Assembly (NCBI GenBank): GCA_964187785.1
Contig: OZ076417.1
Span: 17,422,001 to 17,486,000, forward strand
Direction of reading: 5' to 3'
From: Amphiscolops sp. MND2022
Lineage: Eukaryota
Length of the DNA stretch: 64,000 nucleotides
The notes beneath the pieces are model-generated. The model ran no database searches, was not told the origin of the DNA, and saw nothing but the letters and a program-made list of their open reading frames with translations. The translations under genes and the position numbers were made by a program. Of this stretch, positions 4,665 to 45,710 are shown piece after piece; the stretch's first letter is position 1, and each line of letters opens with the position of its first letter.

Positions 4665-5381
4665 TCAGCCTGAGAAGGATCTGAAATTTGTTTTGCTGAA
4701 GAGGCTCGCTCTGCAATATAAACATCCATTGTCATAACCTTCATCATTTTCATTACTATTGATGGAATCTATTGAATTCCTTCTACAATAATTTGTACGG
4801 TTATTCCTCATCGTTTCTAGCCTAGGGAAGTCATTTTGGGCATCCTGAAACCTTTGGGTAGGATTTTCCGGATGCCGTCCATATGACCCTAGGTCCCTTT
4901 GGGCCCGTTCTTGGCTGAAATCATTCGAATGCGGTCCATCTGACCGAAGGTCCAAATTCGCGTTTTTAGCTGAATTCATGGTTTCCAGAGCGTTTTTGAT
5001 GCTTGGAAGCACCCTTTCCTCTAATGCGGAGTTAATCACATCAAGTATATGAGAATTTAAGTCTGTTTTCAATTCCTCAATTTTTCGAGACATTTGGGAA
5101 GAAATTTCGGAATTAATTAGCCTGTTAGTTTCCACAGTAATCTCACTATTTTCACTCGTGTTAGTGTTCAATAATGACCTAAAGTTATTTTCAGTTTGTC
5201 CTTCACTCCGCTGGTGTCTTCCTGATTCTAAGTCTACTTCAGGTTCTGTATTATTCTCATCTTCAACTAAATCATTTCTCGAGTAGGCTCCTAACATTAC
5301 ATCGAGGTTTTCAATATCTGACATCACGTCAGATTGTCTAGAACGTTTCTCTTTGGCCTTTTGCTTTCTGGTAGAAGGCAT
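4665..5381 (-). CDS. Truncated Gag N-terminal ORF in the 3' LTR, reading 21 codons into flanking DNA
   Basis: Identical to the first 217 aa of Gag up to ...DEGYD, then NGCLYCRASLFSKTNFRSFSG* from the host flank. Confidence 0.7.
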   Translation of the reverse strand: MPSTRKQKAKEKRSRQSDVMSDIENLDVMLGAYSRNDLVEDENNTEPEVDLESGRHQRSEGQTENNFRSLLNTNTSENSEITVETNRLINSEISSQMSRKIEELKTDLNSHILDVINSALEERVLPSIKNALETMNSAKNANLDLRSDGPHSNDFSQERAQRDLGSYGRHPENPTQRFQDAQNDFPRLETMRNNRTNYCRRNSIDSINSNENDEGYDNGCLYCRASLFSKTNFRSFSG

Positions 5382-6180
5382 GACAAGAAGATTGAACGTT
5401 TCTAACAGTGAATTTTGCAATTGATCAAATCAAATCAAAGAGGTTGTATATAGCGTTTCAATATCAACAAAGTGATCCTCTAAACATCGGACTCCTTGTA
5501 TATATAGTTGGGGGACCATGACAATCATTATTTGGGGTGTCATGGTAATAAAAATACAAATGATGTCATAACACTATAAATAACTAAGCGCAGACATGAC
5601 GTCATATTACATCATCAACTATAAATAGCACTAGAAAGGGTTATATCAATAACTGGTAACACTAGTGGTTACATGTACGCAATACTACGTTACGTCGTGA
5701 TAGCTATACTAAGGTATTGCATGAAATAACATGTTGACCTAATGTCAGATTGACTGCACTAAATAACTAAGTTGGTACTGTTTGTCAAATATAGATGGTT
5801 TGTGACCCAACGTCAAAATGACTATAGCACTGTACTGGTACTTAGCGTTAATAGCACTTGAGATTAAATATAGTTGTTGACAGGACGTCAACATGACTAG
5901 AGCGTATTCCCTCTAGCCCCATATCAGGCGTCAAGTGAATACCGTGAGTATATTGATGCGGTCAGTTTGACCTTAAGTCCAAACAGTAGAATATCAGATT
6001 TCATGGTCAGGCTATTTACTAAATACTACTAAAATCAACGAATACATGTAAAATGGTAATTAACATTGTAAATGAGTTATTTCAGTTTCTATATTGGCAA
6101 TACCCCGGGTCCGGGGTTAATTTGACAGTTTTGAGGCATGATTTGATACAAAATGCCGTCACAGGCGGCAGCCTGTGACA
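4730..6180 (-). repeat. 3' LTR (1451 bp) of the 16-kb Gypsy element
   Basis: Near-identical copy of 19371-20821, flanked by TSD TCCAT on its outer side. Confidence 0.96.
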
Positions 6181-6898
6181 CTCCCCGGGGGACTAAGACA
6201 AATGAGCCTGCCCGCATTCCCGCTTGAAAAGCCCGTCGTTTGGCCATCCTCTGATCGTATGTTTCTCCACTGACATGTGAGCCTTCTAGATAGCCCAGAG
6301 TTATTTCCTCTCTGATTTCGGGGAAAGATTTCCCACAGACCACACATCCCGAGTGATAGGTTTCGTTTGGTTGCCCGCAATATCCACTCACGGAAATTGC
6401 CAACCCTGTGATGTGCTGGTTCTGAGCCCATTGATCTGTATATTGCTCGTGCTGTTGCTGGCTGTCATATTGATAGTGCGGCATTTGGTCGACTAACGGG
6501 GGTGAAGCAGGAGTTGCTGGAACCGGCTCAAGTTGACTACACACTGCAATCGGGTGTTGATCCACATTCTGTGCACAGTAGGAGGCTGGAGGATGACCTA
6601 CAGCCCAGTTGATTAATTCTTCAGAAGGTTCGGTGAAATCGCCAATCGTATCCGGAAGAGTTTCTGCTGGTAAGCTGAGGTCATTCAGACTTTCAGTCAA
6701 AGTTGTTGTCATGGCACGTCCTGCAGCTAGCTGTGGAGGGAACGGAGGTTTTTCATAAAAGCATGCCAACACTTGTATTTCGTCTTCGTCTGGTTCTCTG
6801 TCCAGCAGATCTTGAACGGATGTGATTGAATCCACCTCCATATCCTCATCAGAAGAGGCGTACTCAAGGCTGACTAGCGATCTGGGGCGTTCTTCCAT
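6089..6898 (-). CDS. Orphan acidic accessory ORF (~269 aa) in the env position, ending ~30 codons inside the 3' LTR
   Basis: Track ORF 6089..6916. Strong Kozak ACCATGG at 6898, preceded by a possible acceptor CTCCAG (6910-6905). Cys/His cluster YCGQPNETYHSGCVVCG. No signal peptide or TM segment visible. Confidence 0.6.
   Translation of the reverse strand: MEERPRSLVSLEYASSDEDMEVDSITSVQDLLDREPDEDEIQVLACFYEKPPFPPQLAAGRAMTTTLTESLNDLSLPAETLPDTIGDFTEPSEELINWAVGHPPASYCAQNVDQHPIAVCSQLEPVPATPASPPLVDQMPHYQYDSQQQHEQYTDQWAQNQHITGLAISVSGYCGQPNETYHSGCVVCGKSFPEIREEITLGYLEGSHVSGETYDQRMAKRRAFQAGMRAGSFVLVPRGVSQAAACDGILYQIMPQNCQINPGPGVLPI
6181..6192 (-). promoter_or_regulatory. Atypical polypurine-tract position (TCCCCCGGGGAG); only 6 purines, palindromic
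   Basis: Sequence immediately upstream of the 3' LTR TGTCA on the minus strand. Confidence 0.55.
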
Positions 6899-8481
6899 GG
6901 TAAACTGGAGGGACATTCTCCCGTTGTAACGGCTGAGTAGTATTTTCTTGGCAATTTTGATTTATAGATCTCGTGAGACTGATTTTCAGCTGAGTAGATG
7001 TGAGAATGAAGTGATATGGTCGTTCTGACCTAAGGTCTAATCTCAGAATTTGCGGGAAAACTAAAAGGGAAACCCCGCACACCATTTTCCTTATATTCCT
7101 ATTATAGGTAGATTTGGCTGAATGGGACATCAACAACTTAACGGTTGGGTGAGGTGTCTAGTCGTCAAGTAGTCCTTGAGTTTATTTGGCTTTTCTCTTC
7201 AAAGGTCTATGAAGCGGTGTTAACAGGTTGTTAAGTCGTTTACCACTTTTAATATTTGTCAACAATGTTGATCAAAGACCATCGGTCTATGTGACCGTAG
7301 CAGTTGTAATAGCCAATCAGATAAGTTTGACGAATATAAAATAAAATGGAATTTGATAAGGTGAAGCAGTGATTTTGATGAAAATTGAACGTGATGAAGT
7401 AATGTTTTGATTGATACATGTGATGGTTACATAAGGTAGTGAGTTTAATCTGACAGACAGTTGAAGCGTTGAATTACTAATATGATGCACTTTTAGGGGT
7501 ACTTCACTGGCAGGTTCAGTACGCACGATCATTGGTAATTTCATTCCGATTGACATAGTTTTGAGGAATAAGTTAATTCTAAATAATTTATTTTCAGCCA
7601 CGGCTCTCGTTGAAATTTCATTTAATGTGCAATTTTTCAATTAAACGCGGTTAGTGCTTTTGTTGAACGTGTTGTCCACTAATTACGTTCCATTGAATGA
7701 GTCGAAATACTTGGGTGAGGTAAATGCACTGCATGTTGGGTAATAAAGCAAGGTACGTTAATTGATTATTGTCAGTTGAATAAATTCGGTCTCAATAGTA
7801 CGGGGTGTACATGTAAGTAAATTAGTATAGTCTAAATGACCTGTGGTCTTTCATCATGGATGACGTCACAATGTGGAAGAAAGTAGGCTGCTATTATCAC
7901 CTGTCCTATTCCACTGGTAGCTGAGTACATGTAAGCGTTTGTAGTCAAGTGGACTTATTGTCCCATTAAGTAAATAATAAATGAGTGCAAAGTCATACTA
8001 TGTAAACACTAATCTGTTGCAGGCGGAATACAGCGTACATTACGTCATTTGGATACCTTCGTTAATAGTTGTTCACTATACGTTTGGTCTAACCGTTCAA
8101 AGTTGACAGTTGTAATTGATTACAGTTTCCGAGTAGCATCACTTAAGCTGTATTAATTTCCATCAGGAATTTAATGCTGTCTTTCTGACCTTGGGACCGT
8201 ATCATTTCCTTTCAATCCTTGTTACGCACTGGAAATCACATCAAATTTGACTTCTCCTTTAGATCAGTCTACAGCTCTAGTCTGTTTCACTATTTTGATT
8301 CCGCTTCTTTTGAATTGTAGACTAAAATTGATTTTGTGATTACTGATTGCGTTATCATCGCTTGTTCTGGTTTATCAATCCGACTGAAAGTCTCATCACT
8401 CAGCGTTGTAGGAAGGAGCTACCGAAGCCATACGATACAACAGTTTACTGCTGCTTTTGAGCTGAATTCAGACCTTCCATC

Positions 8482-11400
8482 ATGGAAGTATCTTCAGGTT
8501 GGTTCTTTTTGAATCGTTAAATTTTAGCTTGATCAGGGCTTTCATTTAACTAAGAGTCTTCCTCCATCGTGAAAACATACTAAGATGTGTGAAATTTCAA
8601 ATCTACTTCCGGAAGTTATTTGAATGCGGCAAGATGGATATTTTTGCAGGAAGCGAACCGCGATTATTCATTTCCTTTCGTTTAGAAAATGAAACAACTG
8701 GCCAACCAGCTCAAGATACGGAAGAGAAAATGGACACGAGCTCTCCTAGCTTGGTTCGTAGAGAAGCAGTTGAAGAGACTTCAAGTGATGAGATTGAGGT
8801 AATCGAGATCACTTTATCCAGTCCTGAGTGCACAGACATTGAGTCTGCTCTACCCCCAGTCACGCTGATGAAAACTGAGCCTGAGTCTGAAGAAGCGCAG
8901 ATATTTGCTGAAATTCAAAGGAGAAGCGGATTTACAAGTAATAGCAGCACTGGTTCTGATGAAAGTTTCGGAGCGTATGTGACAAGGAAACTAGACGAGA
9001 TGGAACAGTCTGGGCAACCTGAAGTTACACCCAAGACCAATGGCAAGGTCAAACAGAGTGAAAGCGAACCAATTGTCATGCAGCCTAATTGTAGTCCCGA
9101 TGGCCAGGCTTCTTCAAAGCAAACACTCCCTCTTTCCCTATCCAAATACATCAGCGTGGTCAACAACCCTGATGTCAAGCAGATTGAGCCAGCCGAGGTT
9201 ATTGACACGTATGAGTTCACATTTGCCCCAGCAGTGAAACACAAGTCCATCCGGAATGAGAATGAATCCTGTCAACTTGACTCTACGTCCTTAGAACCAC
9301 ATGAACGTCACTTAGCTGAGACACAATCGGGCAGTGAGACTGAAGTTCCATTCTTAAGTGACCATGACTCTACCCGTTACGCTCGGTCAACGTTAGCAGA
9401 AGCGTTGGCACCCCCCAAGACTCAGTACCTCACTTGTAATAGCGATGGGTCTGACTATGAGTCAACCATACAGGCACCCGTAGCAGCATCTAGAGAAGCG
9501 CCTATCTCAATCAGCAGTAGGGAGATAATTCGCAAGTGTTTTGCTGAAACAAATCCCATAAGTCTACCGCAAGGGCACCCGACCGTCGCCTTTAACCAGG
9601 AACAGATGTGCCAAATGCTGAAAGTGGTTGCTGACGAGACGGCAAAATCGACCTTTGGGATGATGAACAGTCTCATACTGAAGGCAAGTCAACTCAACTT
9701 GAACCAGAGTCCTCATTCCGCCAAAAGTATGCATCGGCCAAAGTCAGTCCAATCAACCGGTACGGATTCAGAAACTGACCGGTATACGTTCCGTCACAGG
9801 ACTCCATCTGGTCAAAGTGACTTTTGGACTACCGATCATTCTCGTGAGCAAACTCCCAGTCGGGCATCGGAGATCAACATTCCAAGTCCCCCAGTACCTG
9901 GGTGCAGTCGAAATGACCTTCAGTCCCCAGCTTTGGAGAAAACCGCCGACAGTCCAGGAGCACAGACCTTGGCTGAGTTGAAACGTGAAGCTGCAGTGAC
10001 CAAAACCAAAAAGAAGAAGGGTTCCAAGCGTCCCACCGCTACTAAATCAAAGAAAAAGAAACCCGTGTGGAGGTCTAACAAGGTGATGCGAGAAGAGCTA
10101 TTTGAAGGAATAAGTTGGGCAAGAACTTTTGTTACCGGACCAATGGATCCTAAGTGGAACCCCTATAAATTTTACTGCCAAATTTGTAAGGGGAACGTGT
10201 CCATCTATGGCAGGGGCGTCAAGGAAATTCTTAGACATCACAAAACGGAGCGCCACCTTCGTAGAGACCAACGATGGCGGTATGAACACCTGTCTGTGGA
10301 GGATCCAGTCACCAAGACGATTCGTCACTACGTCAGAGACGAGAATGGTAAACTCTTGACACCGTACGAATTGGAACTTGAATATCCCAAATTCAAGGAT
10401 GTGACTCTCGTTGACATCGGAGAGAAGCTGCCGTTCTATGATGAGGCTATGGCAGGGAATACCCACATGACGTCGTCTTCTGAAAACAGAGTTCGCGTAC
10501 AGATCTCGATCTTGGGCCACTTTCTTCCTAACTTTGGTGACATTAGGTCTTTGCGCAGTTTGTGGAAGGATATTGGAGTAGTCGTCAACCACCAGGCTTT
10601 GTTCTCTGACTTCAACTGGGGAAAAGAACGCCTCTCAGTAAGTCCTCATAAAGTAATTTGCTACTCAGCGTCTAATTGACTAGACTATCCAATATATCGA
10701 TACCTTTCATAAGTTAGGTCATACTTAGCCCTACCGTTATCCTGGCTTGCTGTTACGTTTCAAATCCCCTTGTTAGTATGTTGGATTTGTGTTTTCAGGT
10801 CCTGTTCCATCACATATTCGTGCGATTGTTGGATGACCTTGGGCAATACATTGTGGCTGAAGGACAGTTTGCCGTTGAGTTTGAGTTGAAAGGCCTATTC
10901 CTCTTTATGCACGTGCGTTTCTGGCGAGACAACCAACTGTGTCGTGTTGTTTTGAAAAGGACAGGGCGGACTGGCGGACAAACCCAAGCTGAAAAACATC
11001 TTTTCTCCAGCCTCTTGGGCGCTATTTCAACGCGTCCCAGTCCAGTTTGTGCTAGTGGATGTTCACTCGATTTCGTCCAAGAATTAGATGAGAGTCCTCT
11101 ATTTACATTGGGAGTTCAGAGCTTCAAGCGATTCGACGAGGTGTCACTAGCTAAGTTGATGCACAAGGAAAATTATTCGGTATTTGGACGAATTGACTTC
11201 TTTTCTACCCTAAAGTACTTAGTTGTCTCACTTGGCGGCAGTTTGGACATGGAGTGTGTCTTGCTATCCCCTGAGTTGTCTAAGGTTAGAGTCTTGCATT
11301 GTTTTTGGGTTTCCATGACTAAGACTAGGCCTAAATGACTGTGTTATTTGTAGGCGATTAGAACATGTCAGCTGGACGTCTCTAAACTGCATATCCTCTG

Positions 11401-12867
11401 TCAGGAATTGATAAAGAATTGGAAGTCAATTGTGGAGTTTCTTACTACATATTCGCTCAAGCAACAGATGCAAGGGGTGCATAATCAGGTAGGAATTTGG
11501 TCAAACTGACTTTTGGTCAAATACTCAAATCCCTTCGCAGCTGTAATATGTCTCTTGCTTCTAGCCGCAGAATTTGGAATGGTCGATCATCGGCGATGAA
11601 CTTTTCACTTGTCGACTAGGATTGTTCCAACGATTAACACGGGATTGTTAGTGCTCCTTTCTTTCCTTTCATCGTTATTTGGTCTCTTCAAACTGATTCC
11701 TAGGTTCGTTTAGATGCTAATGCCTTTTCACTCAGTCTGTCGGGCCGAAGAGACAGGTCATTTTACACCTACCGTCAACTTTGCCAATTTCTATTCAAAC
11801 TTGCGCGACGATGTTCTTCGCCAAAAGATTTGCCTCCAGAGGAAAATTGGCCTGAAATCCTTGACTTGGACTTGGGAACTACAACTGCACTCAGTGTCAA
11901 GAATTTCCTTTCTCGAGCCAAGTTTGGTTCTAAGTTAGACGCAGCTTGCAAGATCAAAGCTGGATACGACAAATTGGAAAAATGCAACGCAGGTCTATCC
12001 ATCGATGCACTGTCTGACAAGGATAAAGAAGACTTTGGAAGGGCAGCACGCAGTTACGTCACCTTTTTATTTAATTCGTTCCAAGGACTGAAGGGACTAA
12101 CTAATGACCTCGTTAAAGGCTTGGGTTGCTTTGATTTGGAAATTATCCTGCTTGGACCCATAGCACACGCAACTTACTGTCACACGCAATTGTTTACCAG
12201 TTTCCGACTGCGGGGCCATTTTACTATGGAACAAGAGACTGCAAGTGGTGAAGAATACCTGTCATTTGTGGATGATCTGAGGCGTACTTACTCTGACCTG
12301 GCGCAGCCTACTTTACTGATACCTGATACAGTCAAATTTCTTGTTGAATTGCCTATCCTGCATAGTCGACCTTTGCTCTTCAAGCTGTTTCGTTTGGCGT
12401 GCCTGTGCCTCGATGAGCCTTTTCCTGTTTTACCCAGCGTGAAATTTGGATCAGTTGATTCTGACAACCCGACTAGCAGTCATATTGATGTAATTTTACC
12501 TGTTCAATCTTATTTTGCTAATGTACCCTACAGTATTGAGGCTGTTACTACCGATCAATCCGTATCTGATTTCCTTCGTCTGGAGCCTGATTTTATTGAT
12601 GGTGGAATGAGCGATACTTATTGCCCCTGGGACAGCGTTGACTTCTTTGGACGTTCGAAGATTCTTGAACAGCTAACTTCTGATATTAGCAGACCAAAAC
12701 CCTCAGTCAGCATTGCTGTCGGTAAAGTTGCAGGGAGCAGTAAGGCTTCCGGGGCGTCCAAGTCGTCTCCCAAAAAGAGTAGCAAGCGACCCAATCAGCA
12801 GTCACCCGATAAGGAAATGATTTCGTCAGCTAAAGCCTTGTTGACCCCTAGTAGTTCTAAACTCTAA
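8482..12867 (+). CDS. Antisense, five-exon accessory gene (~1250 aa): acidic S/E-rich N-terminus, basic NLS, BED-like C2H2 finger, degenerate hAT-transposase-like core and C-terminus
   Basis: Predicted exons 8482-8497, 8686-10637, 10799-11284, 11354-11488 and 11704-12867. All introns are GT..AG (GTTGGT/TTTAG, GTAAGT/TTTTCAG, GTTAGA/TTTGTAG, GTAGGA/TTCCTAG) and all joins preserve frame. Start context catcATGG. Finger FYCQIC-x16-HHKTERH at 10176-10256. hAT-like segments FAVEF..MHVRFW, ELIKNWKSIVEFL, DFGRAARSYVTFL..KGLGCFD and RPLLFKLFRLACL. The exon 4-5 junction is the least certain. Confidence 0.8.
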
Positions 12868-13057
12868 TTGTACATTATGTACAATTGAATTCTTTAGTTT
12901 GTACATTTGTCTATTTATTCTGTGTGGGTGTTTTATGTCATTGCTTTCATTCGTATTTCGTTCCTTTTCTGATACCATTTCATTCAGTCCAAAAGACGTA
13001 CTGTTAGTCTGGGCCTCGTAGAGTGGTCATTATAAAGAGTTTAATTTACATGTCTGG

Positions 13058-16000
13058 TTAGTATCTGTATTCATCAGTAAAGTTTGGAGTAGGGTTGGGA
13101 CGTAGGTTATATTTGCCTCCCCTGGGACTTTCATTTTCTACAACCTTTTCATCATCTTCTCTTTCTGATAAATCGGGCACGGATATATCCCTCCCGCTAG
13201 GGTTTGAAAAATCGGAATTTGGCATCTCCGATGGGCTTTTGAAAGGCATTTCTTCTATTTCTGGATCTGTAGTTGATTGTGGTCGGTTTGACCTAAGGTC
13301 CATGTCAGGTGAGTTTTCAGCCGGCTGCTCGGTGACGGCTGAGTCAGTATCTTTGTTCGGTCCGGTTGACCTTGAGTCAATATCGCTATTTTGGTGCTCA
13401 CGCGGTGTAGCGGCGTTGTCGTTAGAATCGGCGTCACGTCTAGTGGACCGAAGGTCCAAATCCGTGTTTATAGCGTCGGGTTGGTCAGAATTCGTCGGAA
13501 AATCATCAGGAGTGTCTCCTGTATCAAGATGAGGGGGAAACTCGGCAAATTCAGTCTCCCACGAGATAATATAAAGATCGTCTTGAGGTATAATAATTTC
13601 ATCATCAGCTTGTAAATTTCCTTCTGGTCGCACATCACATAATTCCGTATTTGGAACGTATTTCCGCAAGCGTATCCTGTGTAAAATTTGCGTTTTGTTA
13701 GAGCTGAGTTTTCGGACAATGTAGTTTTCATTCGGTAGGACCTTTTCAATGACGTACGGTCCAATCCACCTGAATTCACGGAATGGAATTTTGGATCCTT
13801 GATTGTCGGCTAACGGCTGTAATATAAAGCAATAATCTCCCTGGTGTAACGGGGCTGCTTTAGCTTTTCGGTCATAATATTCCTTGTATTTTAAATATGA
13901 CTGCATGATATTTTTCTTTGTTCTATCAATTAAAATTTGGGTACGTCTTTGTAGTTCTTCAGCAAAATCCGTTGATGGTAGGATTTTCGGGTTGGGATTT
14001 AATCCCAACCTGTGGTCTAGGATGTTGTAAGGCACTCTACCGTGAAAAATTCTGGATGGTTCACATCCTAGACTGGAATGATAGGTTGTGTTGTAATTGA
14101 GAACAGCCAATGGTAAATATTTGTGCCATTGGCGCCGGTATTCACCCGAAGCCATTTTAAGATTGCCTTTAAGACTTGCATGAGTTCTCTCTAATTTACC
14201 TATTGTCTGAGGATGTTTCGTTGTTGCACATTTGATCTGGATACCTAGGATCTTTGTGACTTCATCGACTAGACGAGACGTAAAGGCAGTTCCTTTGTCA
14301 GTGATCAAAGTTGTTGGCAAATATGCATGCCTTGTCATGATGTCAATAAGTACTTTTGCGGTAGTGGAGGCCGATGCGTCGGCTACAGGGTAAGCGAACA
14401 GGTATCTTGAAAAGACATCCAGGGCAGTAATAACATTTTCATATCCCCCGCTCGGTGGGAGGTTAGGTAGAAGATCAATCTGTAATGCGTCTTCCGGGCC
14501 AAGATCCCATTCGGGCAAATTAAGAAGTTCAGGTGTTATTGATGGGTTTTTGATTCGTTTATCTTTGATGCATGTTTCACATCCTTGGACCCACTTTTTG
14601 ACAATTTTTGCAATTCCAGGGTAGTAATAATTTTGACGGATGTCATAAAGCATCTTGGAAATTCCCGGATGTTTATGTGCTGTCCCATGCAGTGATTGGA
14701 GTAATTCTGACACGAGGTGTTTGGGTAAAAGCGCCTGACGATATTGGACGCTTCCTGTTTCGTCATAATAGTCTCTAAGGACGACGTCGTCCTGGACGGA
14801 CAGACGGTCAATTTGACTGCAGTAATGTCTGTAGCGCGAATCTTGTTGTAGGATCGTCTCCGAATATTCTTCTTTCTGCAGTTTGAGACGTAACTGGTGC
14901 AATACCACATCATTTTGTTGTTCAATAGCCATGGTGGTGGGGTTTGATAGTCTTTGTAAAGTTGTTTGATGTGAAAAGACAGTGGTGTGGGCACTGAGTT
15001 TTCCTAGGGTGATGTCAGGTAATTGATTTGTCGGGTTTGACCTGGCGTCTTTCTTCCGTTGACATATCTGTTCTTCAGTTTCTTCATTATCGTCAGTGTA
15101 GAATATCTGGTCCTCCTCAGTGACTCCGGCGGATTGCACATTTAGTTCGATGGGCGTTGTCGATATGTCTTCCCGTATGCGGAGTATGAGTTTCTCTTTA
15201 GGGCAGATTTCTAGACGAGACAGATAGTCTGCGGCGGTGTTATTTTTGCCAGGAATATGAGCGATTGTGAAATTGAACTGAATAACGTAGTCACACGCGT
15301 TCCACAGGGTGGGTGGAATTATTTTAGTCTGAAAAAAGCGAGTGACCGACTTGTTGTCTGTCAGAATGATCACCGGTTGCGGAGTCCCCCAAAAGATATG
15401 TCCAAATTCCTTGAAGGCAAAGAATATTGCTAAGAACTCTTTGGCGTAGATGGACATTTTCAATTGTGCGGGACTAAAGGTCTTGGATCCATATGCTACA
15501 GGTGCGAAGGCTTTCCGCGTCGATGAATATTTTTCCATTGGATCGTCCTCGATGAGAACTGCGTAACCTGCTGCCGAAAAACTAGCATCTGTCATTAGAG
15601 CGATTTGTTTATTAGGCAGTGGTTGTTTGAGCGCGAGTTCACAACATCGGTCAAGAGCTTTGTTGATCTCGGTGAATTGTTCTAACAGATCGGGCGTCAC
15701 CATGACTTTAGCATCATTTTTCAATAATTTGAAAAAGGGGGTCATTTTTTCTGAAAGTCTTGGAATGTAGTTGCGGTAGTAGTTCAGGAAGCCCAAGTAT
15801 CGTTGAAGTGCTTTTTTGGATTTTGGAAATTTCGTTTTCTCTAGGAAGTTTTGGACCCTGGGTCGTTGTGGCCTCACTCCTTCAGGGGTGATGGTGCGTC
15901 CCAGGAAGTCAATTTCTTTGGCTCCGAAGTGACATTTATGCATTGTCAATTTGAGACCAGCGGTTCTGATGCACTCAAAGGTCGCTCGTAGGTTGTTGAT

Positions 16001-18238
16001 AAGTTGTGTCGCGTTGTTGGCTGCGATTCCAATATCATCTACGTACTGTGCGCATTGATCCGCTTTAATCACCTTGTCCAGGTATTCGCGCATAAAGCTC
16101 GAAAAGGCGGATAGGGCTCTGCTTAGACCTTGCGCAAGTCTGCGATAGGCAAAGGTTCTGCTAGCAAAGTTGAAGGCTAGCATCTCAATTGACCTCTGGT
16201 CTGCCATCTGAAGGCAGTGATATGCTTGAGAGCAATCCAATTTGCAGAATAATCGTTTGCCTGCCATATGTTGGGCAGCGTCCGTCAGTGTGCTGACAGG
16301 GTGATTATTGTTGATGTAATCATCAGAGATCAAATTATTGATCTTCCGGAGGTCGACCAGGAGTCGTAGTTTGCCATTTGGTTTCTTCTGGGCGAAAATG
16401 GGGCTTGCATATTTGGAAAACGGAAGCGTTGTTATGATCCCATATCTGTGTAGAAGGGCTAATTCGACGAGGATGTCCTCTTTGAGATTGATGGGTGTAG
16501 GCAAGCTTTGACTGTAGGCAGGGGAGTCGTCTTTAGGGGTTAATTTTACCTTGAAGTCCTCGTTCATCCCTATGTCAAAGCGGTGTCGTGCAAAAATGTC
16601 GTGGAATTCGACAAGAAGCTCTTCGATTTGGGCAATTTCAGTTGGGTTCAACGTCGAGTCTGCCCAATCAAAGTTGGCGAGAAACTGTTGTCTAGACTCC
16701 AGGTCATCCTGGGGGTTGAGTTTCTCTAGTTCTTGCAGGTTTCGCAATTCTTTGAGAATTCTTTGTTGTATTGGGGTATGCGTCTGAGGATCTCCTGGTT
16801 GCTCTGGAGTAGGAAACCAATAGTTTTCGCTGTTGTCTTCGGTTTTCGGAGATTTGATCAGACTACTGGCATAATAAACGGCATTTTCAGGATTATCCTG
16901 TAGAAGATGCCAAGTGGTCACAGGGTCGATAGGTTTGACGTATTTCAACTGTTCTGGAGTTAGTACAGAGAAATTGGCGATGTGGGAACCTCGTTTGAGG
17001 GTGTAAGGCTGATCGGTGAAATTGTTCACATGAATTGAAGCTTGACCTTGGGTCAGTGTGACTAGAGCGGCGCAGAAGGTTATATCACCGTCTTCCGCGA
17101 GGTCATTGCTCGGTTGAAGAATTCCAGTGACGGTTGTATCCTCGTACATTTGTGAGCACATGGATACCATATGTCTATCATTGGGAGGGATAGTGATATC
17201 CTCCCGGGTGCAAATTGGTTCCATGACATTAGTGTATTTGTGGTCCGCGGTTTTTAATTGCATGGAAAAGAACGGGAAGTTTAGGACTCCCTGTCTCATG
17301 TCAAGTATGGTATTGTTTCGTTGAAGGAACGAAAGGCCAATTAATGGACTTGTGAGCTTCTCCATGACTATGAAAATCTCGTGAAAATCGATGTCCCCGA
17401 CCTCGAATTTGAGTTCGACAGTGCTCTTGGGAGTTTCCAGCTGTCCATTAGCTACCATAATTTGGAAGTTAGGAGCTGGGCCCTCTTTGATGATTGACTG
17501 AGGGGCTAATAGTCGGATTTTACGTAGATCAGCTTCTGGGATTGCGCTCGATAATGCTCCCGTGTCTACAAGGCCATCTAAAGTTAGTTCGCCGAAATCC
17601 ATTGGAAAGTAGAGCATGCGTCTTTTATATTTGAGTCCCAAATTCGTCGTTAGAGGGACGTAATCGGGTTCACCGGCTCTTGAGATAAGCGAATTCACAA
17701 AGCGTTCTTCAACGGCTGCAGTCAACATGACCATAGGTCCTTCTTCGGAAGGTTTGTTTATTGATTCTTCTGGATTGGGTAAAGTTGTGGTGGTGCGATT
17801 ATATTGCCAGGGATCTACGAGAGCTTTGGTCAGGGTTAAATTGAGGGTTCGGTCGATGTCATATGAATCAAGTTCAATTTCCATGGGGTTCTTATGGTAA
17901 TTGTTGTAGAAATGAAGATGATGTTGGTTGTAGAGCTGAATGTCCCAATAAGGGTCGAAACCAAAATCCGGGTCAAGGTAATAGGGATTATAGTCATTTA
18001 TGAGGGGTAGGGGCCGGGTAGTACTAGTATTACAGTGGAGTCTATTGGACTGATGGTCCAAGTCAAGTAGGCTAATAGGGGTGTTTAACACCTGCTGCTG
18101 CCAGTCAGCAGATGAATTTTCTTTTAGCGAAGAATAGTATTCAGTATAGTATATAGTGGAAGGGTCAGATATGATGTATTGTCTGACTCGTAGTTTTTCA
18201 TTAATATAGAGCCGTGGCGAATTTAGTTTTTTGAGTTT
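13058..18238 (-). CDS. pol: Pol polyprotein: aspartic protease, dUTPase-like insert, RT, RNase H, integrase (Gypsy order)
   Basis: Motifs LVDTGA (PR), YVDD (RT), TDAS...TDN (RH), H-H-C-C zinc finger, QIDLL/TDKG/LERTH (IN D,D,E) and WIGPY. The reading frame is open from 18238, overlapping the gag end in the -1 frame. Confidence 0.96.
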   Translation of the reverse strand, partial: KLKKLNSPRLYINEKLRVRQYIISDPSTIYYTEYYSSLKENSSADWQQQVLNTPISLLDLDHQSNRLHCNTSTTRPLPLINDYNPYYLDPDFGFDPYWDIQLYNQHHLHFYNNYHKNPMEIELDSYDIDRTLNLTLTKALVDPWQYNRTTTTLPNPEESINKPSEEGPMVMLTAAVEERFVNSLISRAGEPDYVPLTTNLGLKYKRRMLYFPMDFGELTLDGLVDTGALSSAIPEADLRKIRLLAPQSIIKEGPAPNFQIMVANGQLETPKSTVELKFEVGDIDFHEIFIVMEKLTSPLIGLSFLQRNNTILDMRQGVLNFPFFSMQLKTADHKYTNVMEPICTREDITIPPNDRHMVSMCSQMYEDTTVTGILQPSNDLAEDGDITFCAALVTLTQGQASIHVNNFTDQPYTLKRGSHIANFSVLTPEQLKYVKPIDPVTTWHLLQDNPENAVYYASSLIKSPKTEDNSENYWFPTPEQPGDPQTHTPIQQRILKELRNLQELEKLNPQDDLESRQQFLANFDWADSTLNPTEIAQIEELLVEFHDIFARHRFDIGMNEDFKVKLTPKDDSPAYSQSLPTPINLKEDILVELALLHRYGIITTLPFSKYASPIFAQKKPNGKLRLLVDLRKINNLISDDYINNNHPVSTLTDAAQHMAGKRLFCKLDCSQAYHCLQMADQRSIEMLAFNFASRTFAYRRLAQGLSRALSAFSSFMREYLDKVIKADQCAQYVDDIGIAANNATQLINNLRATFECIRTAGLKLTMHKCHFGAKEIDFLGRTITPEGVRPQRPRVQNFLEKTKFPKSKKALQRYLGFLNYYRNYIPRLSEKMTPFFKLLKNDAKVMVTPDLLEQFTEINKALDRCCELALKQPLPNKQIALMTDASFSAAGYAVLIEDDPMEKYSSTRKAFAPVAYGSKTFSPAQLKMSIYAKEFLAIFFAFKEFGHIFWGTPQPVIILTDNKSVTRFFQTKIIPPTLWNACDYVIQFNFTIAHIPGKNNTAADYLSRLEICPKEKLILRIREDISTTPIELNVQSAGVTEEDQIFYTDDNEETEEQICQRKKDARSNPTNQLPDITLGKLSAHTTVFSHQTTLQRLSNPTTMAIEQQNDVVLHQLRLKLQKEEYSETILQQDSRYRHYCSQIDRLSVQDDVVLRDYYDETGSVQYRQALLPKHLVSELLQSLHGTAHKHPGISKMLYDIRQNYYYPGIAKIVKKWVQGCETCIKDKRIKNPSITPELLNLPEWDLGPEDALQIDLLPNLPPSGGYENVITALDVFSRYLFAYPVADASASTTAKVLIDIMTRHAYLPTTLITDKGTAFTSRLVDEVTKILGIQIKCATTKHPQTIGKLERTHASLKGNLKMASGEYRRQWHKYLPLAVLNYNTTYHSSLGCEPSRIFHGRVPYNILDHRLGLNPNPKILPSTDFAEELQRRTQILIDRTKKNIMQSYLKYKEYYDRKAKAAPLHQGDYCFILQPLADNQGSKIPFREFRWIGPYVIEKVLPNENYIVRKLSSNKTQILHRIRLRKYVPNTELCDVRPEGNLQADDEIIIPQDDLYIISWETEFAEFPPHLDTGDTPDDFPTNSDQPDAINTDLDLRSTRRDADSNDNAATPREHQNSDIDSRSTGPNKDTDSAVTEQPAENSPDMDLRSNRPQSTTDPEIEEMPFKSPSEMPNSDFSNPSGRDISVPDLSEREDDEKVVENESPRGGKYNLRPNPTPNFTDEYRY

Positions 18239-20022
18239 TTAAGGATAGAAGTAGTTGTCTTATTATTGGAGTCGTCATGACTTGCGGTTTTGTCATCGGA
18301 GGTAGAGTTATCTAATTTGAGGTTTTTGGGCTTGAGGTGGGCTCCTGCGCCTTTCCAACAGCGCTCCGCCGGGTGGTTCGTTTTATCACAAGTTGGGCAC
18401 TTTGGGTACTCTTTTTTGGTACTTTGGCCTTCATTGCGTTTTTGTTCTTCCTTTCTTTTGAGTTTTCGGCATTCATCTTTGACGTGTCCAGGTTTTTTGC
18501 AATAGTTGCATGTCGTTCCTGTGTCAATCCCTGACGAAAGGAGGCCTTGTCCCGGACGTGTCGTCGTTGGGGCAGTGGACATTGTGGGAACGGGAATGTC
18601 GTCACCTTCCTCAAGGCCATTTAATTCTAATTCACGTTCTAGGTGAGTGACAATTTCTTCATAGGTCGCGTTTTCTAATCGCGCCATGTTGACAGAACGT
18701 TTGAGTTTTGGTGGAAGTTTGGCATAGAGCAGACTGTCGATCATTGCTTGCGCGTGTTCGCCGAAGGCTTTTTCGGCACCCTGATTGAGTTCTTCAAGAA
18801 AATCAGGCAATTTCATTGTATTCGGGTTGAATACGAGTTTGTGCCATTTGTGTTTGGCAGTTGCCTGAGATTCAGGTTTGACATATTTGCGGCGAAAGAC
18901 AGCCAGTATGTCGTCCAGTGTTTGTCTGTTTGCTGAACTAATGTTACGGAAGGTCTGGAGCGCATTTTTGCGCAACAGTGAATGAAAGTGATTAATTTTC
19001 ATTGTTTCCGTCATGTCCGGTTGCATCTTTATCATCGTGTGAAAAAGATCTTCAAACAGTTCAAATTTTTCGGATTTCCCATCAAATGTCAGAGTGGCGG
19101 TATTGACTGGGCGTACCATCAGTGTTTGTGCAGAAGATTTGTTGTTCATTCCTATAATTACGTCTGCAAGGCGGTTAATGGGGTCTAAGGGTGTTTCAGA
19201 GTGTTGTCTCTGGTTGTTAATAGGGACTGACGGTATTTGCGCCGGTAGGGTATTATCTAGTGTGTCATCATTGACACACTGTTGATGGGGATTGGTATTT
19301 CGGGACTGCGTGGGACGTCCGGTCAGAAATTCAGGGACCATTTGTGGGGTAAGGTTGGCTCCTGTCACCATGTCATAACCTTCATCATTTTCATTACTAT
19401 TGATGGAATCTATTGAATTCCTTCTACAATAATTTGTACGGTTATTCCTCATCGTTTCTAGCCTAGGGAAGTCATTTTGGGCATCCTGAAACCTTTGGGT
19501 AGGATTTTCCGGATGCCGTCCATATGACCCTAGGTCCCTTTGGGCCCGTTCTTGGCTGAAATCATTCGAATGCGGTCCATCTGACCGAAGGTCCAAATTC
19601 GCGTTTTTAGCTGAATTCATGGTTTCCAGAGCGTTTTTGATGCTTGGAAGCACCCTTTCCTCTAATGCGGAGTTAATCACATCAAGTATATGAGAATTTA
19701 AGTCTGTTTTCAATTCCTCAATTTTTCGAGACATTTGGGAAGAAATTTCGGAATTAATTAGCCTGTTAGTTTCCACAGTAATCTCACTATTTTCACTCGT
19801 GTTAGTGTTCAATAATGACCTAAAGTTATTTTCAGTTTGTCCTTCACTCCGCTGGTGTCTTCCTGATTCTAAGTCTACTTCAGGTTCTGTATTATTCTCA
19901 TCTTCAACTAAATCATTTCTCGAGTAGGCTCCTAACATTACATCGAGGTTTTCAATATCTGACATCACGTCAGATTGTCTAGAACGTTTCTCTTTGGCCT
20001 TTTGCTTTCTGGTAGAAGGCAT
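18223..20022 (-). CDS. gag: Gag (599 aa from the ATG at 20022) with two CCHC zinc knuckles; the N-terminal ~217 codons lie inside the 5' LTR
   Basis: Track ORF 18223..20061 starts at TTG; the first ATG gives MPSTRKQK. Knuckles CNYCKKPGHVKDEC and CPTCDKTNHPAERC. Capsid-like region LTFDGKSEKFELFEDLF. Confidence 0.93.
   Translation of the reverse strand: MPSTRKQKAKEKRSRQSDVMSDIENLDVMLGAYSRNDLVEDENNTEPEVDLESGRHQRSEGQTENNFRSLLNTNTSENSEITVETNRLINSEISSQMSRKIEELKTDLNSHILDVINSALEERVLPSIKNALETMNSAKNANLDLRSDGPHSNDFSQERAQRDLGSYGRHPENPTQRFQDAQNDFPRLETMRNNRTNYCRRNSIDSINSNENDEGYDMVTGANLTPQMVPEFLTGRPTQSRNTNPHQQCVNDDTLDNTLPAQIPSVPINNQRQHSETPLDPINRLADVIIGMNNKSSAQTLMVRPVNTATLTFDGKSEKFELFEDLFHTMIKMQPDMTETMKINHFHSLLRKNALQTFRNISSANRQTLDDILAVFRRKYVKPESQATAKHKWHKLVFNPNTMKLPDFLEELNQGAEKAFGEHAQAMIDSLLYAKLPPKLKRSVNMARLENATYEEIVTHLERELELNGLEEGDDIPVPTMSTAPTTTRPGQGLLSSGIDTGTTCNYCKKPGHVKDECRKLKRKEEQKRNEGQSTKKEYPKCPTCDKTNHPAERCWKGAGAHLKPKNLKLDNSTSDDKTASHDDSNNKTTTSILKNSKN
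18226..18232 (-). promoter_or_regulatory. Putative -1 ribosomal frameshift slippery heptamer A AAA AAC
   Basis: XXXYYYZ heptamer in the gag frame immediately before the gag stop. The -1 frame is continuous with pol, with no stop from 18238 to 13058. Confidence 0.8.
19359..19370 (-). promoter_or_regulatory. Primer-binding site TGGTGACAGGAG (possibly tRNA-Leu)
   Basis: Starts with TGG directly after the LTR-terminal CA. The complement ...CTCCTGTCACCA resembles a tRNA-Leu acceptor end; the tRNA identity is inferred. Confidence 0.8.
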
Positions 20023-20821
20023 GACAAGAAGATTGAACGTTTCTAACAGTGAATTTTGCAATTGATCAAATCAAATCAAAGAGGTTGTATATAGCGTTTC
20101 AATATCAACAAAGTGATCCTCTAAACATCGGACTCCTTGTATATATAGTTGGGGGACCATGACAATCATTATTTGGGGTGTCATGGTAATAAAAATACAA
20201 ATGATGTCATAACACTATAAATAACTAAGCGCAGACATGACGTCATATTACATCATCAACTATAAATATCAATAGAAAGGGTTATATCAATAACTGGTAA
20301 CACTAGTGGTTACATGTACGCAATACTACGTTACGTCGTGATAGCTATACTAAGGTATTGCATGAAATAACATGTTGACCTAATGTCAGATTGACTGCAC
20401 TAAATAACTAAGTTGGTACTGTTTGTCAAATATAGATGGTTTGTGACCCAACGTCAAAATGACTATAGCACTGTACTGGTACTTAGCGTTAATAGCACTT
20501 GAGATTAAATATAGTTGTTGACAGGACGTCAACATGACTAGAGCGTATTCCCTCTAGCCCCATATCAGGCGTCAAGTGAATACCGTGAGTATATTGATGC
20601 GGTCAGTTTGACCTTAAGTCCAAACAGTAGAATATCAGATTTCATGGTCAGGCTATTTACTAAATACTACTAAAATCAACGAATACATGTAAAATGGTAA
20701 TTAACATTGTAAATGAGTTATTTCAGTTTCTATATTGGCAATACCCCGGGTCCGGGGTTAATTTGACAGTTTTGAGGCATGATTTGATACAAAATGCCGT
20801 CACAGGCGGCAGCCTGTGACA
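19371..20821 (-). repeat. 5' LTR (1451 bp) of the 16-kb Gypsy element
   Basis: TGTCA/TGACA termini, abutting PBS TGGTGACAGGAG on the minus strand. Matches 4730-6180 except at 20269 and 20272 (by-eye comparison). Confidence 0.96.
20140..20147 (-). promoter_or_regulatory. Candidate LTR TATA box (TATATATA); second copy at 5499-5506
   Basis: Lies about 120 nt upstream of the gag ATG, downstream of a U3 containing a TGACGTCA (CRE-like) motif. Confidence 0.45.
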
Positions 20822-21799
20822 TCCATGAAACAGATTTTTGAACCTTGTTCATTATTCACATTTTTCTCAATTATTATTTCATTTTTCTCAATTCACTCTT
20901 GCTTGGGTGGAGATTTATCGCAGTTTAAAAATTTTTTCATTGCAGCTGAGCGTTTATCATGTTTCCGCCATTTTTTTGCAAAATTACTTCAGTAACGTTA
21001 AGAATTGAAAACTAGCGTCATCTCAACTAAAAGCGGTGATCACATTAAACAATAATTCCGTGAAAAATTCAATTCAAAAAGATCCAAACGTTCGAAGTTG
21101 GCTCAATTACAACGCAGGCCTTTTGTACGGTAAAGACAAAAAAACAGTAGTAGCGCTTTTCTCGAATTTTGGTCAATATTGGGGATTTTAAAACTGTTTC
21201 TAAATTCCTATTACTAGCAGAAATTCTTGGTGAACAGAATTTCGAAAAGACACCATTGCAACTATTATTTTCACTCCAAATATTAAGAATAACAATCAAA
21301 TTTAACTGGAAACGTCCTTTTTTGCTTGCTCTGTAATTTCTTATCACAGTTTTCAGACGAGTAAAGCCTTTTGCGACCATTCGGACTGAAATTTGAACGA
21401 ATTGACAGGTTATTTTAATTTTTTCCCGAAAATGTGACATACCTCTTCGTTGTTTTTTTTTGGAAACGTTATACGTCGGAGCGCATTAACCGGAGCGTTC
21501 TCCTTTTTCGAAAAAAATTCCCCAAGGTCGCACTTCATCTCGGTGTAAGTTTTACTTGCTGCCAGATATTGTTTCGATTGTTTTTTTCTGCGACGAAATC
21601 CTAAGTACTTGACACTTGTGAACGGATTTAACATTAGCCATACGAAAGTTATATGAATCGAAGGAACAAGAAGCCCGAGGAACTTTTTATGGAACTTGTG
21701 TTGCGAGAACTTTTGTCGTTACGAGGAAATTGGCCGTTTCGCAAGGTTCTGCTAAAAATTTTGTGACGAAACTTGCGCTCCGATAAGCACCTTAATTAT

Positions 21800-38162: not shown

Positions 38163-39183
38163 ATGGCGCAGTCAGCGAATTTTTAAAGAAACTGGATTCT
38201 GACCAACCAACGGAAACCATGGCAGAAAAGAATATAGTACCGAATCTTGAAACCAAAGCTACAGACGGGAATCCGGTATTCACACCGAGACAATGGCTAG
38301 AAAGATTCAAACAATTTACAAAACGGGAACACAAGATTGACATCAGAAAGATGAAGACATAACTGATTCCGGTTGGGACGCAAAAGAACAATCAATACAA
38401 GAAGATTTTATCTGGGGAGTGGGACCGGAAGCACTTTTCCAGATAACCCGAGCAGAATACAAGACACACCCGGATAGCATAAAAATTAAAGATCTAATCC
38501 GGTTATATACCGAATACTACTTACCAAAACGGAACACTTACCACAACCGAGGAGATTTCTTGTGGGCGAAACAATCAGAAGAGGAAACACCGGAGGATTT
38601 TTGGAGAAGACTAATCGAAATTGAAAAAGAATGCAATTTCGGCTCTATCTCACCTGAAGAATTACTAATCTCTGAATAGATGACCGCAATAACCAACAAG
38701 AACCTACGGGACAAAATAATGAAAGGAAAACCACTGGAATTGAAGAAGATAATCGAACTGAGGAAGCAAAATACATACGAAAAGAAAAATCAAAAGAATA
38801 CAATTCCGGAAGCATTGATCTCATCAAAAGAGAAACAAATGATAAAAGAAGAACCGATACAGAGAATGGAAAGATTCGGAACAAAACCGATAAATAAACA
38901 ATTCGGAAACCGACCATGTAGATTTTGCAATGCACCAAACTGGTCACCAATACACAAATGCCCGGCATTAGAAGCAAACTGCAATAAATGCGGAAAAAAA
39001 GGCCACTTTGCCAAAGCATGCAGACAAAGGACATACAATAACCGAACAGTGAAAAGACTAACCGAAGATGAAACTCAACAACCGAACGAATCAACTAGCG
39101 AATCAGAAGAGAGCATACATCACATCAAAGAAATAAAAGAATCGAAGAAAAGAACAAACACTATACGGCAACGATCAAAATAA
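38163..39183 (+). pseudogene. gag: Frameshifted gag with Mag-type tandem zinc knuckles
   Basis: CRFCNAPNWSPIHKCPALEANCNKCGKKGHFAKAC, split across ORFs 38419-38679 and 38680-39183. Confidence 0.85.
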
Positions 39184-44144: not shown

Positions 44145-45710
44145 AATGTTCAAAAAAATGTACTTGTTACAGGAAACATGTGGATCCGACCAAAGGGGAC
44201 ACCACAACCGGAGAAAATCCAAAAGCCCGCAGATTTCTTACCAGAAGAAGGAACACCCCAGGAACCAGAACTGAGAAGGAGGAGAAGAAAGAGGGGGAAA
44301 TGTTACATTCGGATTCATTCCGGTTCATGACCTTGCCAAGTTTCGGTTCCTAAATCTACAAACCATTTTATTTTATATGTCCAAAATACCTACTAGTGTT
44401 GACAAATACATAAAACATCAGTACTAAATTAGATATCTCATTTAAACGATTCTGATATCTATGATCTAGACCTACAAAAGAGATTAACTTTTAGAAACCT
44501 TTCATTTCTTAAATCTAGTTTGTTACAGTAGAACAAAAATTTCGTTCAATATTTCGTATTTGGCGTACAGCTTAGTCTTGTCATTCAGGTACCAGTCAAA
44601 GCGAAAAGAGTGCAAAAAGAGACATATGAACAAGGCATGGACCAACCAGGAGTGAAATCGAGAACATCTATGATCACGCCACGTTAATGCGTGAAAGCAT
44701 CTCTTTTTCTTTGGAAGAATTAATGTGCTTTTTAGTCGGCGCTTCATGAAGTGATACGCAACTATTATAGTGAGTTTTTTTCAATCCACACGAACTGAAC
44801 AAAATAGTCCTTAAAAGTTCCCCTGGTCGAAGTGGCCGCGAAGTTTTACAGGCACATTCAAAAAATGCTGGATAATTTTTTATAAAACTTAGAAAATACA
44901 GGGACCATGCCTGGAAAACTTTTGTAAAATTAAAAGGCAACTTATAAAATTTTGCAAAATTACAAGGCAACTTGGAAAGAAATGCTGGCAGCATTTCAAG
45001 GTGCTTTAAAAAATTTCCTGCAACCTTTAAAACATTTTTTCAAAAATCCACGTGTCACCTGAAAAAACTCTCAAAACGATCTTTCAATTCGAACTCAATT
45101 CTCATTCTGACGAAGTCTAATTTCTTCAATTTTGATGTTCTTTCAAAAAAAAACCAATAAGAATAAAACTGAATTAAAATGTTTAAAAAATTAAAAAAAA
45201 ATTAAATTAAAACAATAACTATTGGCTGGTTTTTTTCTGCACCCCCCCACCATTAAAATGTTTGACGAAAATATGCAGGTACTTTTCAAACTGATCGAAG
45301 TAAAAAATAAATTTCTTTCCACAACAGGAAGTTAAAATCGGTTCGAATAGTTTTTTGTTTGAACGAAACCTTTTTCACACATTTTGACTGTGATTAGGTT
45401 TGATTTGATTTTTTGTGACTCAACAAGAAAAAGTGAACAAAGCTTCTATCTGAACCTTGAAAAGTCATATTGAAAATGAATTTAAAACTGAAGGTTTCTG
45501 AATTAGTTCCAAGTCTTTTTTCCCAATTTTTCAGAAAAAGCTGGTGGTTGGGGGAAAAACAGCAAAGAGCCAAACTATTTATGAATGAAGTAGCAAAAAT
45601 CAGGTACATTGCGAGAAAAAATGAATTCCGAAAGTCTACGGTTTTCTTCATCAAAAAGGACACTAGCTGAAGTTGTCAATTCGGATGATTCAACCAACAC
45701 GTCATCACAC

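Follow-up and report, generated by a model that had tools for sequence, protein, structure and literature searches.

A predicted six-exon antisense gene with a transposase-like core in a young Ty3/gypsy-type LTR retrotransposon

The 64,000-nucleotide stretch of DNA analysed here (contig OZ076417.1; the whole stretch is referred to as the window) contains a full-length long terminal repeat (LTR) retrotransposon of 16.1 kb, which extends from 4730 to 20821 with the minus strand as its sense strand and carries, in the opposite orientation, a large gene that is the subject of this report. BLAST self-comparison of the window aligned 4726-6184 with 19368-20824 at about 99.7% identity over 1459 bp, and base-level reading resolved this pair into two LTRs of 1451 bp each with TG..CA ends, bounded by the short target-site duplication (TSD) that is characteristic of LTR retrotransposons (Table 1). 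The pol open reading frame (ORF) gave Pfam matches, in this order, to gag-asp_proteas, RVT_1 (8.6e-23), RT_RNaseH, Integrase_H2C2 and rve; the succession of protease, reverse transcriptase (RT), RNase H and integrase, together with a primer-binding site (PBS) beside the 5' LTR, is that of the Ty3/gypsy type. The carrier is a very young Ty3/gypsy-type LTR retrotransposon and is apparently autonomous. The interval between the pol stop and the 3' LTR is about 6.9 kb long and houses the antisense gene on the plus strand, adjacent to pol, followed by a minus-strand accessory ORF designated ORFx. An initial annotation of the region had described a domesticated, hAT transposase-like gene lying intact and antisense inside an LTR retrotransposon; the LTRs, the TSD, the minus-strand pol and an open six-exon frame bear out that architecture.

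The antisense gene spans 8482-12867 of the plus strand. Long plus-strand ORFs at 8589-10679, 10778-11338 and 11830-12867, which lie in different frames, can be joined through GT..AG introns, and the resulting model has six exons, 3861 nt and 1286 amino acids (aa) with zero internal stops. All five introns are bounded by GT..AG and have pyrimidine tracts. The initial annotation had likewise read an intact spliced frame, which it put at about 1250 aa, somewhat short of the present model, and every peptide string that it quoted is present in the spliced translation (FAVEFELKG at residue 692, MHVRFW at 705, LLGAISTRPSPV at 740, ELIKNWKSIVEFL at 848, DFGRAARSYVTFL at 1009, LVKGLGCFD at 1035 and RPLLFKLFRLACL at 1121). 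Three of the junctions are confirmed by relatives in which the flanking exons are contiguous: exons 2 and 3 in the intron-less relatives P0085 and P0082 (locus L001), exons 4 and 5 in P0305 (locus L011), and exons 5 and 6 in P0146, where exactly two residues lie between them, as the phase-1 prediction has it. No exon boundary has moved to another codon position in the diverged copies L002, L003 and L006, where the flanking ag and gt are kept as well, and the splice-site codon positions are shared by copies whose pol sequences differ by up to 30%. Nucleotide identity between the window and L005/L006 is 72-84% in the exons and 65-76% in introns 2-5, whereas intron 1 is unusually conserved at 91-92%. 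Intron content itself varies by lineage: intron 2 is absent from L001, intron 4 from L011 and L012, and intron 5 from P0146, and the intron-2 region forms an open in-frame read-through in L003 and P0111. Such differences show that introns have been lost or gained inside the retroelement.

The conservation of intron 1 extends to its surroundings. The first exon keeps its ATG-13 nt-GGTTGGT structure in the window and in L002, L003, L005, L006, L007 and L010 despite unalignable flanks, and the block 8460-8660, which comprises exon 1, intron 1 and the start of exon 2, is 87-93% identical to L005/L006. Across deep lineages this block retains, besides the ATG, the 13 nt and the donor, the motif CTTGATCAGGG, the ETS-like palindromic TTCCGGAAG and a second ATG at 8634. 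The latter is in frame, lies 15 nt before the intron 1 acceptor and is also conserved, so that a spliced and an unspliced N-terminus are both conserved and the true start is ambiguous. The block may hold a promoter or a transcription start site.

Relatives of the gene are numerous. The exon 2 product has 239 relatives, the exon 6 product 89 and the exon 3 product 56, all of them ORFs from ENA assemblies, and a profile search with A1 against 1.84 billion cluster representatives returned 672 matches; the 150 of these that were listed are all short ORF fragments of the antisense-gene family (at most 418 aa, the size of single exons), with neither a spliced model of full length nor a recognisable hAT protein among them. 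No relative was found in the JGI metagenome contigs scanned with alignment A3. The relatives come from a long-read assembly, a marine-biofilm metagenome (L001) and a third sample. Nine sister loci (L002-L010) belong to one long-read metagenome-type assembly with a coverage of about 90-145x and span 100% to 41% gene identity; all of them share the order ORFx(-), antisense gene(+), pol(-), gag(-), and their LTR pairs are 94-100% identical. In L011, a short contig from a different sample, the gene ends beside the 3' end of an opposite-strand pol, and in a further sample it stands alone on a short contig. The antisense gene thus adjoins pol in all 10 loci with usable flank (two samples, nine of the loci from one assembly), and its place on the opposite strand between pol and the 3' LTR holds family-wide. 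With dozens of intact copies that are nearly identical and whose LTRs differ hardly at all, the element family is probably active, which would also make it experimentally tractable.

The comparison of dN/dS (omega) across element copies that the initial annotation had proposed gives values of 0.06-0.13 for the whole gene: 0.06 against L004 (38 synonymous and 8 non-synonymous differences), 0.10 against L006 (dN 0.113, dS 1.11) and 0.13 against L005. The conserved exons alone give 0.02-0.11 (0.06 for exon 3 and 0.11 for exon 6), and exon 2 compared with L006 gives 0.03 in its C-terminal part and 0.15 in its N-terminal part. For pol in the same pairs omega is 0.07-0.12; the antisense gene is under purifying selection as strong as that on pol. 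The number of relatives, this selection and the conserved splice sites together place the gene far beyond chance. Comparison of its phylogeny with that of the RT-bearing pol, also suggested in the initial annotation, shows pairwise distances that correlate at r=0.86 (45 non-independent pairs) and maximum-likelihood trees that share the deep split and the tip pairs, with a conflict at L008 that is taken up below.

The predicted protein begins with an acidic region (residues 1-455; pI 4.8; 51% S/T/E/D/P/Q) that is predicted to be disordered, followed by a predicted bipartite basic nuclear localisation signal (NLS) at residues 456-477 (nt 9999-10064) with KKKK runs at 459 and 473, in good agreement with the roughly 470 aa of acidic S/T/E-rich sequence and the basic NLS of the initial annotation. 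Within the fast-evolving acidic half there are two short conserved islands. The first lies at the very N-terminus (residues 6-20, GS.P..FIS..L); the second, of about 55 aa (residues ~296-352, about 9519-9689), reads ..F.E.N....P.G...V.....Q....L......E.........M......KA and is recognisable in P0085 and P0107, which are about 50% identical. The NLS is followed by a finger at residues 495-541 (nt 10116-10256), with SWARTF at 494 and then C515-x2-C518-x16-H535-x5-H541. Alignment A3 is invariant at W, F, G-P-x-D-P, N, C-x2-C, H, H and LR-x-DQRWR-x-E-x-L; the ligand spacing is C-x2-C-x16-H-x5-H and the post-finger consensus is HLR[RK]DQRWRYEHL. By pattern, that is by its W..F.. aromatics and its ligands, the finger fits the BED signature that had been proposed for it, but Pfam zf-BED matched only 1 of 106 family members, at E=0.88. 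The Pfam matches obtained more often from these members (E<=10) are weak, namely zf-C2H2_ZN292 in 46 of 106, with a best value of 3.9e-5, and the KIN17 finger in 28.

The fold was predicted in pieces, one being exon 6 of the window (49 sequences) and the other P0085:470-845 (106 sequences), a relative whose finger and linker run into exon 3 without a break and whose ungapped identity to the window protein is 51% over the C-terminal part of exon 2 and 39% over exon 3. In the AF2 model of P0085 the exon-3 part adopts the order beta1-beta2-beta3-alpha1-beta4-alpha2 with pLDDT 82-90, which is an RNase H-like topology. FAVEFE..MHVRFW falls on beta1-beta2 of this model and LLGAISTRPSPV on the end of alpha1 and beta4, in keeping with their earlier designation as landmarks of a hAT core. 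Foldseek placed Hermes first in the PDB (8edg_A, E=2.4e-3, 288 columns; also 4d1q and 2bw3; probability 0.96-1.00), followed by RT RNase H domains, ISCth4, integrases and P-element transposase. In BFVD the first match was a Pandoravirus japonicus 'HAT family C-terminal dimerization region domain containing protein' (E=3.2e-4, probability 1.00, 305 columns). The RNase H-like core of this modelled relative therefore lies closest to hAT proteins, at marginal E-values. Exon 6 was modelled with confidence as an all-alpha domain (pLDDT 85-97 over model residues 13-230) with a disordered tail, and it comes after the RNase H core. We have good confidence, from these models, that the domain from finger to exon 3 is RNase H-like; that the core is hAT-like is the best available reading and a fairly probable one, and the initial annotation was probably right on hAT origin. 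It had expected zf-BED, hAT RNase H-like and Dimer_Tnp_hAT matches such as Hermes, and Hermes did rank first for the finger-to-exon-3 model, but sequence methods gave no Dimer_Tnp_hAT match and no zf-BED match beyond the single one mentioned above.

The beta1-beta2 and beta4 regions are the sites of the first and second catalytic Asp in DDE enzymes. At beta1 the family has Glu in place of Asp, and the position is 89% acidic (E44/D4 of 54; about 51-55 sequences). After beta4 the sequence is S/T-G-C/S-S/T and 0-4% acidic across about 51 sequences; the second catalytic Asp is absent family-wide, and the DDE triad is incomplete. In the modelled alignment the antisense protein is thus without at least one canonical catalytic residue. 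The initial annotation had regarded both catalytic Asp positions as substituted, which holds for the second, whereas the first keeps an acidic residue in the form of Glu.

The best explanation of these data, to which we assign a probability of about 0.65, is that a hAT-type transposase derivative serves the element as its own nuclear DNA-binding factor, encoded by an antisense accessory gene. Splice sites are directional, which is the principle of antisense-intron retrotransposition reporters. On genomic sense RNA the antisense introns would be reversed and would not be spliced from the RNA that is to be reverse-transcribed, so that the five-intron gene would persist through retrotransposition and be present in every new copy, while the introns would be removed only from the antisense mRNA. 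Purifying selection among copies implies that a copy whose gene is broken contributes fewer descendants and hence that the protein serves the element; the loss of the second catalytic Asp suggests that it most likely no longer cuts DNA. From the NLS, the invariant finger and the incomplete transposase scaffold we infer nuclear localisation, DNA binding and a benefit to the element, the product presumably being a nuclear, sequence-specific DNA-binding factor that acts in trans. Its preferred role would be the regulation of transcription from the LTR or an internal promoter, or protection from silencing; guidance of integration would be the second choice. The HBZ protein of HTLV-1 is spliced, nuclear and regulates viral transcription, and our functional model is drawn by likeness to it. 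A comparable role has been proposed for the antisense ORFs (aORFs) of plant elements (PMC7264820; PMC11963269).

Several results weigh against this reading. The Foldseek E-values are marginal, with TM-scores of 0.2-0.26, and the match to hAT rests on the model of a relative that is 39-51% identical to the window protein. DUF4371, DUF659 and Dimer_Tnp_hAT were never matched in Pfam searches of the exons and 155 family members (106 + 49) at E<=10, the hAT dimerisation domain PF05699 being without a match in all 49 exon-6 sequences, and at E<=10 profiles A1 and A2 gave zero matches among the sequences of the PDB. Foldseek found nothing below E=1 in the PDB for the exon-6 model, neither Hermes as a whole nor its insertion domain, which leaves the C-terminal hAT landmarks of the initial annotation as correspondences by eye. 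The gene is presumed, from its DNA sequence, to be transcribed and spliced in vivo. The beta1 Glu, D298 at the end of alpha2 (98%) and a near-invariant LDEP motif are conserved. Finally, the partner of L008 is L009 in the pol tree (100/99) but L007 in that of the gene (100/100), a well-supported conflict that likely reflects recombination between element lineages, in which modules would recombine.

Some of these results would be expected if the RNase H-like fold had come from some other or an unknown source, for instance a different DDE transposase superfamily or a module derived from an integrase or RNase H, and if the first rank of hAT proteins reflected only the shared fold together with the finger. 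No sequence method detects hAT, the generic RNase H-fold proteins that follow Hermes (RT RNase H, integrases, ISCth4 and P-element transposase) are within about tenfold of it in E-value, and the exon-6 helical domain is without a match to the Hermes insertion domain. But hAT proteins came first in two independent libraries and over 288-305 columns, far more than the RNase H core of about 110 residues, and a finger followed by a linker, an RNase H core and a long all-alpha region is how the domains of hAT proteins are arranged. We consider another origin of the fold possible but unlikely.

A different source for the gene is conceivable as well. It may have been taken from the host, for example from a domesticated hAT-derived finger gene with introns, and be merely carried by the element. 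This would account for the presence of spliceosomal introns and the absence of transposon ends, and the pick-up of host sequences by retroelements is known (PMC11963269). Transduced genes, however, occur in one or few copies (PMC11963269), whereas the antisense gene is present in every lineage examined, including some whose pol sequences are about 30% apart, and omega between element copies is about 0.1. No free-standing relative was found, since all 10 loci with flank lie inside elements and the 150 of 672 profile matches that were listed are without exception fragments of single-exon size. Passive carriage of a host gene is therefore quite unlikely.

The conserved beta1 Glu, D298 and the near-invariant D-E of LCLDEP leave room for a non-canonical active site, and the protein might then still be an active nuclease or transposase that gives the element a second, DNA-level activity; the purifying selection on exons 3-6, as strong as that on pol, would suit such an enzyme. 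The post-beta4 position is nevertheless almost devoid of acidic residues, there are no terminal inverted repeats (TIRs) around the gene that could act as a substrate, and the LTR ends are ordinary TG..CA with the 5-bp TSD typical of integrase, all of which makes an active enzyme of this kind very unlikely. A hAT DNA transposon nested in one retrotransposon copy, which would equally show a transposase-like fold on the opposite strand, is vanishingly improbable, because neither TIRs nor an 8-bp duplication flank the gene (8.0-13.1 kb searched; only chance-level imperfect repeats), as the initial annotation had anticipated, and because position and orientation are the same in all related loci, divergence tracks pol, and frame and introns are intact. 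The sister copies and the absence of TIRs and TSD exclude such a nested insertion and also a one-off transduction.

The remaining parts of the carrier element are listed in Table 1. ORFx lies head-to-head with the antisense gene and occupies the same place in all nine sister loci with 30-79% identity; it has no Pfam match and is a second accessory gene of the element. The 5' LTR contains the first ~217 codons of gag (19371-20022, minus strand), and the PBS falls within the gag ORF. As the start of gag is encoded in the LTR, the 3' LTR carries this coding sequence a second time (4730-5381, minus strand; ORF 4665-5420). The LTR-encoded part of gag is far less conserved than the remainder (60% vs 87% in L002). 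In the same comparison identity to the window is 86-87% for the C-terminal part of gag and for pol but only 58-65% for the antisense gene, ORFx and the LTR-encoded gag part, which means that the modules differ in their histories. Between protease and RT, pol residues 293-374 (about 16970-17215, minus strand) form a weak dUTPase-like stretch (Pfam PF00692, E=6e-4, just under the cut-off) that is faintly present in L007 too. The antisense gene and pol converge, and the 190 nt between their stops (12868-13057) are the least conserved part of the region, at 57-60% identity to L005/L006; the plus strand has no canonical AATAAA here, only variants such as AGTAAA near 13076, and the reverse complement of AATAAA marks the minus strand near 12913. 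Elsewhere in the window, 38600-44200 of the plus strand holds a second, degraded Ty3/gypsy-like element. It has an ORF with a zinc knuckle (38680-39183) and a fragment matching RT_RNaseH (40276-40776, E=2e-29), and its A-over-T skew is strong (0.24-0.37). An Rfam scan of the window gave no match.

Table 1. Features of the carrier retrotransposon and exon model of its antisense gene (window coordinates; a slash marks the exon-intron boundary).
Feature	Coordinates	Strand	Remarks
TSD, left copy, TCCAT	4725..4729	.	Identical 5-mer at 20822-20826, just outside the LTRs
3' LTR	4730..6180	-	Starts TG, ends CA; BLAST and base-level reading
ORFx, accessory sense ORF, 275 aa	6089..6916	-	Last 92 nt inside the 3' LTR
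Spacer between ORFx and antisense gene (divergent); candidate promoter region	6917..8481	.	64% nt identity to L005/L006, patchy
Exon 1	8482..8497	+	ATG + 13 nt, then donor G/GTTGGT
Intron 1	8498..8649	+	Contains CTTGATCAGGG, palindromic TTCCGGAAG and second in-frame ATG at 8634
Exon 2	8650..10637	+	Acidic N-terminal region, predicted NLS, finger, conserved linker
Exon 3	10799..11284	+	Predicted RNase H-like core, beta1-beta2-beta3-alpha1-beta4-alpha2
Exon 4	11354..11488	+	51-87% conserved in L002, L003, L005, L006
Exon 5	11565..11646	+	Donor GAT T/GTTAGT, phase 1; donor motif kept in L002, L003, L006
Exon 6	11714..12867	+	Predicted all-alpha domain (residues ~918-1135), FRLACLCLDEP, basic S/K-rich tail, stop TAA
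pol ORF, 1677 aa	13058..18091	-	Protease, weak dUTPase-like stretch, RT, RNase H, integrase; Pfam
gag, 599 aa	18223..20022	-	ORF; gene call in near-identical L004, weak DUF1759 match
Putative PBS, TGGTGACAGGAGCCAACC	19353..19370	-	Abuts the 5' LTR; from position and TGG start
5' LTR	19371..20821	-	BLAST and base-level reading
TSD, right copy, TCCAT	20822..20826	.	Base-level reading

Returning to the reading of the antisense protein as a hAT-type nuclear factor, we lean, if only slightly, towards the broader proposition that such a derivative has been recruited for good, as a trans-acting nuclear factor, by a whole lineage of active LTR retrotransposons whose host is a marine eukaryote and probably an invertebrate, its introns being kept by the antisense orientation. 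If true, no class I/class II chimera of such kind would have been known before except in plants, and the antisense-intron reporter cassette would have a counterpart in nature. Domestication of DNA-transposon proteins, usually credited to hosts, would then be within the reach of a retrotransposon too, to its own benefit. The gene also shows that spliceosomal introns can persist, or be gained or lost, inside a retroelement over 30% pol divergence. Among LTR retroelements, the plant Tat/Retand elements and the retroviruses are known to have antisense accessory genes, whose functions are largely unknown; the gene described here is large, multi-exonic by prediction, selected like pol and built on a transposase-like scaffold, which makes concrete experiments possible.

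With the hAT transposases, such as Hermes of Musca domestica, the antisense protein shares a C-x2-C..H..H finger with upstream aromatics, a predicted RNase H-like core and an all-alpha region, and it differs from them in that its sequence has no detectable resemblance to a hAT family of Pfam, the dimerisation domain among them. Like the domesticated hAT derivatives (such as ZBED proteins), the antisense gene is devoid of transposon ends and its product of one catalytic Asp; unlike them, it is carried by a retrotransposon instead of being a fixed host gene, and it encodes an acidic, predicted disordered N-terminus of 455 aa.

Proteins encoded on the opposite strand of a retroelement also include HBZ of HTLV-1, ASP of HIV-1 and ORF0 of L1, but these are short, arise from the 3' LTR or the 5' untranslated region and have an unrelated fold, whereas the present gene is predicted to encode a multi-domain protein of 1286 aa from an internal start 2.3 kb from the LTR. 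In animals, the Juno and Vesta elements of bdelloid rotifers, among others, are LTR elements that have likewise acquired foreign extra genes, in the form of ORF3 captures (env, DEDDy, GDSL) (PMC5408684). Those captures are in sense orientation, and their description mentions no introns and uses antisense only for small RNAs (PMC5408684). We found no animal or marine-eukaryote LTR element with a comparable antisense gene in the literature.

By fold, hAT transposases and their domesticated derivatives come closest; by position and orientation, the closest likeness is to the plant Tat/Retand-type Ty3/gypsy elements (Retand with TRP28, Grande, RIRE2), which also carry an antisense ORF between pol and the 3' LTR (PMC11963269; PMC7264820). 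The plant aORFs are conserved family-wide, are predicted to be nuclear or DNA-binding and lie in an unusually long region between pol and the 3' LTR (PMC11963269; PMC7264820). They differ in the type of protein, being of the Transposase_28 family; PF04195 had no Pfam match in the exons or the 155 family members of the antisense gene, which has instead a predicted RNase H fold and five conserved introns, and the Retand paper makes no mention of introns (PMC11963269). The host of the present carrier is, as far as can be judged, not a plant, the relatives coming from marine biofilm and other metagenome assemblies. The arrangement is one that we found described only in plants and retroviruses, and what is new here is that the antisense accessory gene is of transposase type and has introns.

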